Below are positions 8,816 through 41,353 of a stretch of 64,000 nucleotides of DNA, piece after piece. The translations under genes were made by a program, and so were the position numbers. How positions within the stretch are numbered: position 1 is the stretch's first letter; every line of letters begins with the position of its first letter. The DNA lies in contig NC_085844.1 in the NCBI RefSeq assembly GCF_035594765.1, forward strand, positions 195,812,107 through 195,876,106. Direction: 5' to 3'. The notes under the pieces are model-generated. The model searched no databases. It worked only from the letters and a program-made list of their open reading frames with translations, and was not told where the DNA came from. Origin of the DNA: Anolis carolinensis (lineage: Eukaryota).

Positions 8816-11800
8816 TTAAGCTGATGGTGCAAAGCCCACCCTGTTGTTGGCCATATCGTAGACGGAATAATACTCCTTGAGGAAGACGTCACCAAAGATC
8901 CATAATGGCTCTCCAGTTGGGGAAGGCAAGTATGTGGCCTCAATCTGAACTGTACAATAGCCATTGTTCTGTGAAACAAAAGCCAAAAGAAAAGTTATGC
9001 TTCTGCCAGGGGAGTAAAACAAAACATTTTAAGAAAGTCTAGAATAAGGACTTGTTTGCACGATTTTGTGTGATCCTCCTTCATCTTACAGTCTTTCAAG
9101 AGAACTGCCAAAAGAGGCAGGGATTTCTATTTGTATCAGTCCAACCGAATGCCATCCTGAATACATAAATTTGCTAGATCATTGATGATGCTCCTTCTAG
9201 TGTGACGTATGATTTGGATCATCTTGTGTCTGTTAGAAGCAATAATAGGACTCTTCTCTCTGTTAATCCTGCTTTCATAGAATTTACTGCTTGATTCTGA
9301 CAATAACAATTACAGAAGATCTGTTTTGAGATCTGTTCTAATGTAGAGAAGTATTAAAATGCCATTGACAATTTCATTCATGCCTAAAAGAGGACCATTA
9401 GGAAAGAGAAAACAGGATAGGTCCAGGGACTGTTAAAATAGCCAAGCCCAGTTGTCAAGATGTGTAATGAAATTGGCACCTTCTAAGAGCTCAACACTGG
9501 CTTTTCGGCTTAGAAATGGAGATGTGCACCAACCCCCAGAGTCGGACATGACTAGACAACATCAGGGGAAAACCTTTACCTTTTAAGAGCTCAATTGCTC
9601 TTTCCGACTAAAGTGAAGCCACTGAATTAATCAATCATATTTTCACTTCCTAAATTAACAGTTTCTAATATCACTAGCTGGAACCAAAAAAATGGATTGA
9701 ACCTCAAATACTATAAACCAGGTTTGGAAATGTGAATAGCCAGGTTCAAGCTATGTGAATTAAGTTATGAACTCTTATATACTCACATTGGCAATGTAGG
9801 CAGAAGGTGGTAGTGGGAACTGGGATCCATTAATAATAAAGGTGAAGGTGGGCATGTTCTGGACATTGTTGCAGTTCACCTCATACTGTGAAAGCACAAA
9901 TATTAACAGGATTATAACAAATGCAACTTCTCCACCCACTCCATCCCACTTCCTGTATTGAAAATGTCTAGATAAAGTAGCCCCCTGAAACATGCCAGAC
10001 TATCATAGACACCAAATCTATGTCTGCATAGCCTTTTTCGGTTAGTTCAATCTCACAGAAGACATTTCATGGATGTAGCAGATAATCTAGAGTCGTGGAA
10101 TTTCCATATCAGGAAATCCACTCCTGGAATATAGAAAATCCCCTCATGTTGATGATTAAGATATATGCTGTCCATGGAGGCCCTAGATATCACTTTGGCA
10201 ATTTGGCTTCATTTGCTGTTGCTGTGTACCTTCGAGATGTGTATTTTCAGAGTCATAGTCCAACATTCAATCACTAGACCATGTTGTCTCTCTGATTGGT
10301 TGATTAGACCTGTCTTAATTGTGATTTTGACATCACTATGTTCTGGTAGCATACAGCAATATACCTATTTATCTTGATGCACAAATGCTTTCCAAAGTTA
10401 ACTAATCCACTTACCTCACCATTATATTCTTGGCCTCCCACAGCTTGTAGGAAAGTACTCATGTACTGTTGTGGCACTGCCAGCAGATACGTCCCAGTAT
10501 CCACAACTGCCTGACAGCCTTGGCTACACAAGCCAGTAGCCTGGTTGCCAATTAGAAATCTATATTAAAAATGTACATTATTAAGTTAATGAATGACTTT
10601 TAGAAGCTTACAGAGGTGTAATATAGGTGTAAATTGGGGTAAAATGCATGCTCTCTTTATGGAAAGTGAAAACTAGTACAGCAATGCTTTGATTAAAATG
10701 GAAAATGTCAATCTGGCCTTGGTGTAAAAGAGTGATGTATATCACTTACTCCTCAATTCCAATTTGCCAGTAAGCCTCACGGGTGACAGGCGCCCAGGTA
10801 ATTTCCCCAGAGAACATCTGGGTGTCAATACCTCCCAAGATCAATTCTCCTCCATACTGAGCAGTTGGTTGTCTGGGAAAGTAAAATGTTTGAATATAGT
10901 CAAAATTTCACTATATTTATTAACCTGGCAGAAGTCTACATATTCAAAATAAATGGACATAGAGGGGAACAAGCCAAGTATGAAAGGGGAAAGCAGGAGG
11001 CATTTCACACTATATAATTACAACACTATGAATTCACTTTAACTGTCATAACAACATTCTACAGACTCCTGGGATGTATAGTTCAGCGAGGCATTAGAGC
11101 TCTTTGACTGGGAATTCTAAATACCCTCTCTAAAAGGAAAATTCCAGAATTCCATAGGAAATTAGAAAAACGAGGGAAATCATAGATCAATATGGGACAG
11201 AGTATTTCAGACTTGCTAACTCAAAACAGACACCATATTCTGATCTGACACTCACAAGTAGCATCTAAACATGTATTATGCCAACCATTTATTATTTCAA
11301 TTTTGAAGTGACCAGAAAAGAGTGTTTAAAAGGAGTTCACAGCACTTATAACTATGTATAAGGATGAAACATTGTGGTACGAATGGTAATTTATTGGATC
11401 TATCTTTATTCCTCTATATGCAAATATGTATCTATGGAACCAAACAAAAGTTGTCAGATTTTGGATCTTACCGAGAGAAATAGAAGCTGAAGATGGGTTC
11501 AGAGAGCTGGCCTTGCCTCAGCATCTGCTGCATAATAGTGTAACCCCCTACATGGCCTACAGCTGCAGAAGGATAAGACATCCCCAAAATACCATCAAAA
11601 CTGGCATAATAGAAAGGACTGGAAGGTTCATTCTGACTGAGGCCAATTTCCTGGTTGCGTACAACAATGTTCTGGACCTGGGGAAAAGGAACAGATATAC
11701 AGTAGAGTCTCACTTATCCAACACTCGCTTATCCAATGTTCTGGATTATCCAATACATTTTTGTAGTCAATGTTTACAATATATCTTGATATTTTGGTGC

Positions 11801-39900: not shown

Positions 39901-41353
39901 CACAATTCACTAACTTCTGCTACTTAGGTAAGAATACATAAAGTGATATAGGATTCCAGCATAAAGTGTGCTCAAGAGCCAATGCTGCATAGGGGTTAAA
40001 GTGATGGATTTGAACTTGCAAGTAAATTCAGATTTAAGTCCACACTGAGCTGCGAAACTCACTAGATGATCTTGGACCAATTCCTTGCTATCAATCTGAC
40101 CTACTCCATAGGGTTGTTATTGGGAAAGTGAAGAAACAGATACACCAACTTAGGCTTATTGGAGGAGGCAGATAAAAATCAAAGAAGGAAGAGGAATAGG
40201 AGTTTTTCTTCTTTTCTGTCTACATGAAGAAGTCTATCTTTAGATTTTGCCCATCTTTAAAATGTACTTCTTCCAATGATACAACTGAGCTAATACAAGA
40301 TGTTAAGTAAAACCATTTGGGAACATGGTTTTCTTTTGCTTTGGTTTTTCTCTCTCTCCTTTTCTTTGACTTTCTCGATTATGAGCTCCAAAGAAAACAA
40401 GTGTTTTGTATTTTTATTGTAAATGGTAAGGTGGCTTCAGCAGATCCCTGCTGAAACTCCAAGAGTTTCATTTGCTTACTGAGAGTGTTGTGGGCTTTTT
40501 TTTAAAAGATAAAGCTATTACTATTACCTATATTTTATAATCTAGGCTTCCATTTCAGCTAAAGTCTGAATTAATCGTATCGCCCTGTTTGATCCTAACA
40601 GGTTTCATTGGTTTTGAATGCTGGTTGGATGACTCTGGCTATTTTGGCTCAAATAACTAATAACAACCCCTGTTCAATTGTCAGGAGTAAATCTTTGCAT
40701 CCATGCTTTCAAGACCATGAATTTTGAATATTGTATATATTGGTTTGTTGGAGCCCCTGATGGCACAGCAGATTAAACTGTTGAGCTGCTGAACTTGCTG
40801 ACCAAAAGGTTGCCAGTTCAAATCTGGGGAGTGGGGTGAACTCCCACTGTTAGCCCCAGCTTCTGCCAAACTAGCAGTTCGAAAATATGCAAATGTGAGT
40901 AGATCAATAGGTACTGCTCTGGCAGGAAGGTAACAGCGCTCCATGCGGTCATGGTAGCCACATTACCTTGGAAGTGTCTAGAGACAACACCGGCTCTTCG
41001 GCTTAGAAATGGAGATGAGCACCAACCCCCAGAGTTAGACCCGACTAGACTTAATGTCAGGGGAAAACTTTTACCTTCACTGTATATTGGTTTGATTCTA
41101 GTCAAAATTGAAATGACATGTTAATTGACATGAGATGTAGCTGTAAAGTTGAGGTGCGTTCGCTCAGAATACATAAAGGTGATTACATCTCTTCAGAAAC
41201 ATTGCTATTACATACCACTGTTTTCCTGGTTTCCAGGCTCAACTGCAGCTGCAAAGCAACTGAGAAATCCCCAATGTCATTATTTCATACTCACTTGATA
41301 ACTGCACCTTCACAAAGGTGAAGGCACACCATAGCAAGGATTAGCCACTTCAT
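33922..41353 (-). CDS. PGC: Progastricsin / pepsinogen C; 9 exons, 389 aa
   Basis: Exons: 41353-41295 ([20 protein letters not shown]), 39697-39547 ([11 protein letters not shown]...DPASKYF), 38956-38839 ([10 protein letters not shown]), 38637-38519 (QYGTGSLTG), 38142-37943 ([16 protein letters not shown]), 37259-37140, 35885-35738 (IVDTGTSLL), 35197-35099, 34077-33922 ([18 protein letters not shown], stop TAA). Canonical gastricsin motifs; adjacent to FRS3. Confidence 0.95.
34128..34404 (-). mobile_element. tRNA-derived SINE (second squamate family)
   Basis: Minus-strand head GGAGCTCTGGTGGCGTGATGAGTTAAACC, A-rich tail near 34130. Confidence 0.7.
36322..36651 (+). mobile_element. Sauria-type SINE, full length
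   Basis: GGAGCCTCCAGTGGCTCAG head to AACCTTTACCTTTA tail. Confidence 0.85.
37067..37100. repeat. (CA)n microsatellite
   Basis: About 17 CA units in PGC intron 6. Confidence 0.95.
39260..39350 (-). mobile_element. Penelope pseudo-LTR fragment
   Basis: CCTGATGTTTC...GGCATCTTCAGAGG, homologous to 32940-32983. Confidence 0.6.
40750..41077 (+). mobile_element. Sauria-type SINE, full length
   Basis: GGAGCCCCTGATGGCACAG head, conserved core, TTTACCTT tail. Confidence 0.85.

Follow-up and report, generated by a model that had tools for sequence, protein, structure and literature searches.

The window analysed here is a stretch of 64,000 nucleotides (64 kb) of the genome of Anolis carolinensis, the minus strand of which carries three intact tandem pepsinogen genes of nine exons each, here called A, B and C. 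In our judgement the likely reading of the locus is an ancient squamate pair of pepsinogen B paralogs, PGB-a (gene A) and PGB-b (gene B), standing together with a gene of the Pgc2 lineage (gene C) beside FRS3 and having clefts that differ from one another; what the clefts would mean for specificity is suggested by analogy. The three genes and their exons are placed as follows, with residues in pepsin numbering.

8816-16178, minus strand: gene A, squamate pepsinogen B paralog PGB-a, 390 amino acids (aa); Phe13, Tyr219, Leu220, Ala222, catalytic motifs DTG/DTG
16178-16123, 15989-15836, 14688-14571, 12870-12752, 11677-11472, 10872-10750, 10559-10415, 9885-9787, 8968-8816, minus strand: exons 1 to 9 of gene A
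22635-29287, minus strand: gene B, squamate pepsinogen B paralog PGB-b, 388 aa; Tyr13, Cys219, Gln220, Thr222, catalytic motifs DSG/DTG
29287-29232, 28925-28772, 28534-28417, 27552-27434, 27124-26925, 26051-25929, 24566-24422, 23623-23525, 22787-22635, minus strand: exons 1 to 9 of gene B
33922-41353, minus strand: gene C, pepsinogen C of the Pgc2 lineage, 389 aa; Ser13, Ser219, catalytic motifs DTG/DTG
41353-41295, 39697-39547, 38956-38839, 38637-38519, 38142-37943, 37259-37140, 35885-35738, 35197-35099, 34077-33922, minus strand: exons 1 to 9 of gene C

The genes were found by comparing the stop-to-stop frames of the minus strand with one another, which gave three sets of nine conserved coding blocks, and the splice sites were picked so that the phases match across A, B and C. 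All introns run from GT to AG and no internal stop is present, so the three intact tandem genes claimed in the first-pass annotation of this DNA are confirmed. A TATA box stands 70-90 nucleotides (nt) before the CACC-ATG start of each gene, and an AATAAA signal follows the stop at a distance of 79-208 nt. The protein predicted from spliced B matches the UniProt entry G1KVT2_ANOCA (P0190) with 100% identity, and C has 98% identity to a gastricsin-like protein of Anolis sagrei (P0346). A tblastn search of the 64 kb with the three models found no extra pepsinogen exon anywhere in the window, the parts 1-8815, 16179-22634 and 41354-64000 included.

The proteins have the hallmarks of the family. 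Exon 5 of A, B and C matches Pfam PF00026 (E = 3e-15, 5e-18 and 1e-17, respectively), and P0190, identical to B, carries PF00026 along with the propeptide family PF07966. All three have a signal peptide, a basic propeptide whose Lys-Tyr pair, in exon 2 (LKYHF in A and B, SKYF in C), blocks the active site, two catalytic Asp motifs, the flap residues Tyr75-Gly76 and three disulfides. The catalytic motifs (residues 32-34 and 215-217) are DTG/DTG in A and C and DSG/DTG in B; active aspartic proteases with Ser at position 33 exist. From what is established about pepsinogens, A, B and C would be secreted aspartic-protease zymogens that activate themselves in stomach acid.

The pepsin numbering was checked, one exon at a time, on solved structures of pepsin and gastricsin. 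Residue 2 of B exon 3 corresponds to residue 13 of pig pepsin (5PEP) and of gastricsin (1AVF), and the Cys of B exon 7 falls on residue 219 of human pepsin A, residue 215 being Asp. On this numbering the codons of interest are the following.

14683-14685, minus strand: codon 13 of A, TTC (Phe)
10487-10489, minus strand: codon 219 of A, TAT (Tyr)
28529-28531, minus strand: codon 13 of B, TAC (Tyr)
24491-24496, minus strand: codons 219-220 of B, TGT CAG (Cys-Gln), the PGB-b signature; the Cys219 codon is 24494-24496
28469-28471, minus strand: codon 33 of B, TCT (Ser), which makes the first catalytic motif Asp-Ser-Gly

C has Ser at both 13 and 219, and the residues at these two sites in all three genes thus read exactly as had been claimed. 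The pair of bulky aromatic residues at 13 and 219 on which the specificity of pepsin B depends is complete in A, and B has only the aromatic at 13. Further residues of note in B are Gln220, Ser33, Met31, Ala77 and Asp79. Cys219 of B is a seventh cysteine, unpaired, the other six being at the conserved paired places of the mature part. The best solved-structure match to B exons 3 and 7 is human gastricsin (1AVF, 1HTR; E = 3e-19 and 4e-17), and no pepsin B chain is among the solved structures matched by these two exons. The catalytic and disulfide residues of B and human gastricsin align, whereas gastricsin has Ala13, Ser219 and Leu220.

Homologs were gathered by an exon search against cluster representatives and by full-length searches seeded with database proteins. 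A maximum likelihood (ML) tree of 89 sequences was built under LG+C20 with a macaque sequence as outgroup, human pepsin A (P0059) being kept out of the trees; supports are given as ultrafast bootstrap / SH-aLRT (Shimodaira-Hasegawa-like approximate likelihood ratio test). One side of the tree holds Pgc2 of amphibians and amniotes, and the other (99/97) holds amphibian Pgbc, mammalian PGC1, a sauropsid 'gastricsin' lineage and PGB, in agreement with the scheme of Castro et al. 2012 (PMC3298455). A and B are placed inside the PGB clade (100/100), together with mammalian pepsin B and with bird, turtle, crocodilian, tuatara and squamate sequences, as had been proposed for the two copies. Within it the squamate PGB clade (100/96), to which both genes belong, splits into PGB-a (100/97), joining A with copies of leopard gecko, Lacerta, Salvator, Elgaria and Varanus, and PGB-b (96/95), joining B with copies of three geckos, Tiliqua, Podarcis, Pogona, Sceloporus, Elgaria and Varanus and with one boid copy. 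Gecko sequences are basal in both PGB-a and PGB-b, and tuatara PGB lies outside both (98/90). The duplication is common to geckos, lacertids, a teiid, anguids, varanids and iguanians.

A tree in which A and B were forced into an anole-only pair was rejected by the approximately unbiased (AU) test (difference in log likelihood, delta lnL, 95.9; p = 5.4e-8). Moreover, in the leopard gecko a single strand of one chromosome carries the fourth lineage, PGB-a, PGB-b and Pgc2, which matches the A-B-C order of the anole. Because of the tree, the AU test and the gecko gene order, the A/B duplication is a tandem event of the squamate stem, after the split from the tuatara and before the geckos diverged, rather than a duplication of the anole. 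The earlier view of two anole duplicates that were rewired separately does not agree with a split so old and so widely shared among squamates.

The third gene had been called a canonical PGC. The tree places C in squamate Pgc2 (95/91), amniote Pgc2 (97/95) and Pgc2 including amphibians (96/92), where it groups with quail and chicken gastricsin, alligator pepsinogen C, marsupial gastricsin-like proteins and frog PGC, all of which share Ser13, Ser219 and Leu220 with it. The six mammalian gastricsins form a clade of their own (96/92) on the PGB side, without C, and human and other eutherian PGC (PGC1) stands with PGB on the other main branch (99/97). C is therefore misnamed as canonical PGC: it represents the Pgc2 lineage (chicken, quail and frog type, lost in eutherians) and is not an ortholog of mammalian PGC. 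In the gecko, too, the Pgc2 gene stands last in the row, behind PGB-b. The fourth lineage, which is the sauropsid 'gastricsin' and sister to PGB, is present in Anolis sagrei (P0284) and in other squamates and lies outside the window, so that the name of a three-enzyme battery does not suit the locus. Since the gecko order is that of A, B and C, the fourth gene of the anole is predicted beyond the low-coordinate end of the window.

The cleft residues were then compared in a census of about 400 aligned relatives sorted by clade. Lineages other than PGB almost always have Ser or Ala at 13, Ser219 and Leu220, and the Ser13/Ser219/Leu220 cleft of C is shared by nearly all the aligned sequences of Pgc2, PGC1 and the sauropsid fourth lineage. 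The PGB lineages have an aromatic residue at 219 nearly everywhere and one at 13 except in most birds, which have Ser. The aromatic 13/219 pair can accordingly be kept as a hallmark of the PGB clade, being typical of it and not universal. The commonest state of mammalian PGB is Phe13/Phe219/Leu220 (28 of 36), Phe/Phe being modal in PGB; Tyr13/Phe219, the dog-type state of the Ferae, is found in badger, lynx, jaguarundi and pangolin, and Tyr13/Tyr219 in leopard, otter and sea lion. The state of A, Phe13/Tyr219, occurs also in Lacerta. Because Phe and Tyr interchange at both sites across PGB, the 'reciprocal aromatic swap' that had been seen in A is better described as ordinary Phe/Tyr drift.

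The loss of the aromatic at 219 in B (codon TGT) had been noticed correctly. Gln220 and Thr222 are present in all 11 PGB-b sequences, and residue 219, aromatic in none of them, is Cys in eight (geckos, a skink, Podarcis, Sceloporus, the anole and one Varanus copy), Cys219 being confined to PGB-b among the relatives aligned. Cys219/Gln220 is a conserved signature of PGB-b inherited from the PGB-b ancestor, and not a change made in the anole. Met31 is common to both squamate paralogs, and Ser33, Ala77 and Asp79 are later changes inside PGB-b. Ser33 is an iguanian residue (B of the anole and the PGB-b of Sceloporus and Pogona) that has arisen separately in crocodilian PGB.

Two observations were made on PGB sequences of other reptiles. 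The crocodilian PGB proteins (P0260, P0268 and P0277) have an Asp-Ser-Gly first motif and also Gln220, independently of the iguanian PGB-b. In snakes there are two more PGB groups (P0272/P0273 and P0282/P0288, P0275, P0276 and P0294), both with Phe13/Phe219/Leu220 and one with Leu31; one of these groups is placed inside PGB-b and the other is basal to squamate PGB on a long branch.

Between A and B the nonsynonymous divergence (dN) is 0.109 and the synonymous divergence (dS) 0.84, which gives a dN/dS of 0.13; by region the ratio rises from 0.065 in residues 1-59 (signal peptide and the greater part of the propeptide) through 0.14 in the mature enzyme to 0.21 in the exon-7 segment. The exons of the two genes are 76-88% identical, and exon 7, which contains sites 215-222, has diverged most as protein (29%, the other exons showing 12-25%). 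Both genes have been held under purifying selection since the duplication. Recent gene conversion between A and B was also considered and none is visible, as every exon shows differences at 21-57% of its fourfold sites and the introns are without similarity. Upstream of the two genes the shared sequence amounts to one 28-nt block and the TATA box.

Kageyama is said to have traced, in 2006, the narrow and gelatin-preferring specificity of dog pepsin B, with Gly at P2, to the bulk of the residues at 13 and 219, and dog pepsin B in which the aromatic pair was replaced reportedly had a broader specificity. In dog pepsin B the aromatic pair at 13 and 219 would narrow the S2 side of the cleft. Residues 13 and 219 are described as crucial to the substrate specificity of pepsin B (Kageyama 2006, as given by Castro et al. 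2012, PMC3298455), and in chymosin the counterparts of pepsin residues 220 and 222 line S4 and S2+S4, respectively (PMC3640475). Since A has kept the clade-typical aromatic pair, Leu220 and Ala222, it is expected to act as a classic pepsin B. In the paralog to which B belongs the aromatic residue at 219 has been replaced by a small one, modally a free Cys, and Leu220 by Gln, and in iguanians Thr33 has also become Ser, with changes at flap positions 77 and 79. The S2-S4 wall of B may thereby be wider and more polar on the 219-220 side, the aromatic at 13 staying in place, and its specificity might lie between those of pepsin B and of the broad pepsin C type, or be novel. C would be a broad pepsin C-type enzyme.

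Compared with mammalian pepsinogen B (dog, pig), A and B have in common the orthology group, the aromatic residue at 13, the nine exons and the zymogen layout, and A alone has in addition the aromatic 219, Leu220 and Ala222. Mammals have one such gene and squamates two, and Phe31 of mammals is Met31 in A and B. B differs from the mammalian protein in Cys219-Gln220 and, in the anole, also in Ser33, Ala77 and Asp79. Moreover, mammalian PGB has left the PGC locus, but the array of the anole retains its PGB genes (Castro et al. 2012, PMC3298455).

A further suggestion, which we make tentatively and hold to be possible rather than likely, is that PGB-b is an undescribed squamate-specific class of pepsin, kept over about the entire age of crown squamates because a free Cys219 in place of the aromatic residue and Gln220 in place of Leu give it a cleavage preference found in neither classic pepsin B nor pepsin C. 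If this were true, the range of gastric proteases would be broader in lizards that take arthropods or vertebrates whole, and A and B would form a pair of reciprocal mutants made by nature in the S2-S4 wall of pepsins. Because the two paralogs differ at the positions of dog pepsin B specificity, they offer a natural test of the effect of 219-220 on S2-S4, with a bearing on digestive adaptation and on the engineering of pepsins for the processing of gelatin or collagen.

Several observations weigh against an ancient pair with differing clefts, and they concern residue 219, the snakes and the status of A. Residue 219 is not fixed in PGB-b, being Thr in Pogona, His in copy 2 of Elgaria and Ser in copy 3 of Varanus, and the boid copies placed within PGB-b have Phe219. 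On the tree at least five changes of this residue took place in PGB-b, which fits one gain and four replacements. The PGB copies of snakes are placed unstably in the tree. In addition, the effect of Cys219 and Gln220 on the specificity of B is one that we infer from the mutants of dog pepsin B and the subsite maps of chymosin.

Such variation bears on the alternative that the PGB copies were kept for dosage, or for a differing timing or place of expression, the change at 219/220 having little effect on specificity, which we find rather doubtful. The variety of residues at 219 in PGB-b (Cys, Thr, His, Ser) suggests relaxed demands after the loss of the aromatic, the regulation of A and B may differ because their upstream regions have so little in common, and tandem expansion is frequent in pepsinogen families (Castro et al. 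2012, PMC3298455). Nevertheless Gln220 is invariant in PGB-b and Cys219 persists in geckos, a skink, a lacertid, iguanids and a varanid, and against a change of little effect stands the crucial part in pepsin B specificity that is given to residues 13 and 219 (Kageyama 2006, as given by Castro et al. 2012, PMC3298455).

The status of A bears on another alternative, that A is silent or decaying in the anole, being the 'psi-Pgb' of Castro et al. 2012 (PMC3298455), and that only B, C and the fourth gene are gastric enzymes; this we consider unlikely. The frameshifted fourth anole sequence of that paper groups with Pgb, and the public models of A differ from the one given here. The 'pepsin B-like' protein of the anole at NCBI (P0200, 311 aa) is A minus exons 3-4 (12752-14688), hence without Asp32, and the Ensembl/UniProt model (P0270) is garbled at the exon 7/8 junction (9787-10415), the only place where it differs from A, by reading through the donor of exon 7 and making an irregular join to exon 8. 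Exons 3-4 are, however, intact in the window with canonical splice sites, and because their skip (237 nt) stays in frame it can be an artefact of gene prediction. Exon 8 of A (9885-9787) is open and conserved here, and the misreading of exon 7/8 is probably the source of the 'frameshift in exon 8 / psi-Pgb' of 2012.

The sequencing runs bear on both B and A, within the limits that none is recorded as RNA, that the run types are guessed and that contigs show presence and not absence. One study supplied four contig sets of about 80 Mb (X4-X7), in which 45-59% of the words sampled from gene B are present, B being a stretch with almost no repeats detectable inside the window. On exons 1-7 of A, X4 and X5 have essentially repeats only and almost nothing unique, while holding about half of B, and X8 and X11 have low-depth unspliced pieces that are DNA-like; no exon-exon joint of A was seen on exons 1-7 in four runs, which are contigs of unrecorded type. 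The pattern of X4 and X5 would fit strong transcription of B with little or no A in those samples. At position 12848 the C of the window is a T in run X11; the change is synonymous (CCG>CCA, Pro codon 117 of A) and probably a polymorphism.

The gene itself argues otherwise, with its nine open exons, canonical splice sites, TATA box and poly(A) signal, its dN/dS of 0.13 against B, a branch no longer than that of B, and its intact orthologs in gecko, lacertid, anguid and varanid, that of the teiid (354 aa) being partial. The intact frame, the low dN/dS and the mostly intact orthologs are the reasons why decay of A is argued against. Expression of A is nonetheless something that we infer, and the evidence for expression of B is indirect. 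Progastricsin-like proteins dominate the gastric juice of the python (PMC5597892), and their annotation was taken from the anole protein to which Castro et al. give the name Pgb.

That the two anole duplicates were each rewired separately, by a Phe/Tyr swap in A and a half-reopened pocket in B, and make with a canonical PGC a complementary set of three enzymes is very improbable, for although the residues are as stated, both copies are of PGB type and exon 7 with 219-220 is the most diverged at the protein level, the duplication is squamate-wide, Cys219/Gln220 comes from the PGB-b ancestor, Phe13/Tyr219 recurs in Lacerta in a family where Phe/Tyr exchange is common, C is Pgc2 and a fourth lineage (P0284, A. 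sagrei) is found outside the window. From the interpretation of the first-pass annotation there remain the PGB membership, the aromatic pair and the loss at 219; the swap, the separate rewiring, the canonical PGC and the three-enzyme set are given up.

The ancient pair and Pgc2 are flanked within the window by two coding blocks of an adaptor gene.

63377-63658, minus strand: PTB-domain exon of the flanking gene, read as FRS3 (Pfam PF02174, E = 8.7e-15)
54588-55532, minus strand: long C-terminal coding block of the flanking adaptor gene, read as FRS3

We take this PTB-domain adaptor to be FRS3, a name that rests on the synteny of Castro et al. and on what is known of the protein. The blocks lie upstream of C on the same strand, and C is the copy nearest to the PTB-domain exon. 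Frs3 adjoins the tetrapod Pgc cluster (Castro et al. 2012, PMC3298455), and the blocks read as FRS3 show that the window covers the Frs3 end of the Pgc array. It takes in that part of the Anolis carolinensis Pgc cluster of the same paper which lies towards FRS3, with three of the four genes.

The cluster itself is already known, since Castro et al. 2012 (PMC3298455) list four anole genes, namely Pgb, a frameshifted 'psi-Pgb', Pgc1 and Pgc2. The species and the locus are the same as here, with two Pgb-type sequences in tandem with Pgc-type genes beside Frs3. The second Pgb is for these authors a lineage-specific duplicate with a frameshift in exon 8, whereas in the window it is intact and its duplication is squamate-wide. 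No mention of the 219/220 signature was found in the parts of their paper that were consulted. A survey of 75 vertebrates (2026, PMC13389413) repeats the Pgb/Pgc2 scheme and leaves lizards, squamates, reptiles and Anolis unmentioned. The literature thus already contains the cluster, the scheme of Pgb and Pgc2 and a second Pgb copy in the anole. Neither an account of the ancient squamate duplication nor a description of a conserved Cys219-Gln220 paralog signature was found in a literature search that lacked most subscription journals and is no proof of novelty.

The overall result is a modest refinement of a known cluster in a well-studied family. It corrects the record of a model reptile, in which the second anole Pgb is intact and no young pseudogene, its duplication is old and common to lizards, and the neighbouring 'PGC' is Pgc2. 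Moreover, the public names 'pepsin B-like' and 'gastricsin-like' conceal four distinct lineages.

The assembly of the window has one gap, between A and B.

21019-21162, no strand: assembly gap (run of N), intergenic

The gap lies 4.8 kb upstream of the ATG of A (16178) and 1.47 kb beyond the stop of B (22635), past the AATAAA of B at 22556, and is crossed by no exon and no reading frame. It is abutted by one of three copies of an interspersed repeat (20523-20972), the others being at 11631-12063 (intron 4 of A) and 45395-45613. Open reading frames of this repeat at 11628-11864 and 45395-45613 begin alike, and bins holding the repeat reach a depth of 1e5-1e6 in the sequencing runs, so that the element is one of very high copy number. 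An element resembling a short interspersed nuclear element (SINE) is also present in several copies with similar short open reading frames in the introns and flanks of the cluster (4762-5147, 6698-6886, 9433-9561, 36338-36642 and 40681-41105). Simple repeats in introns include a run of ATT/ATA type at 14940-15000 (intron 2 of A) and a (CA)n run at 37040-37095 (intron 6 of C). On the plus strand, 2310-2693 holds an Asp/Glu-rich open frame of 127 codons with no Pfam match, which could be an exon of a neighbouring gene or part of a transposable element.

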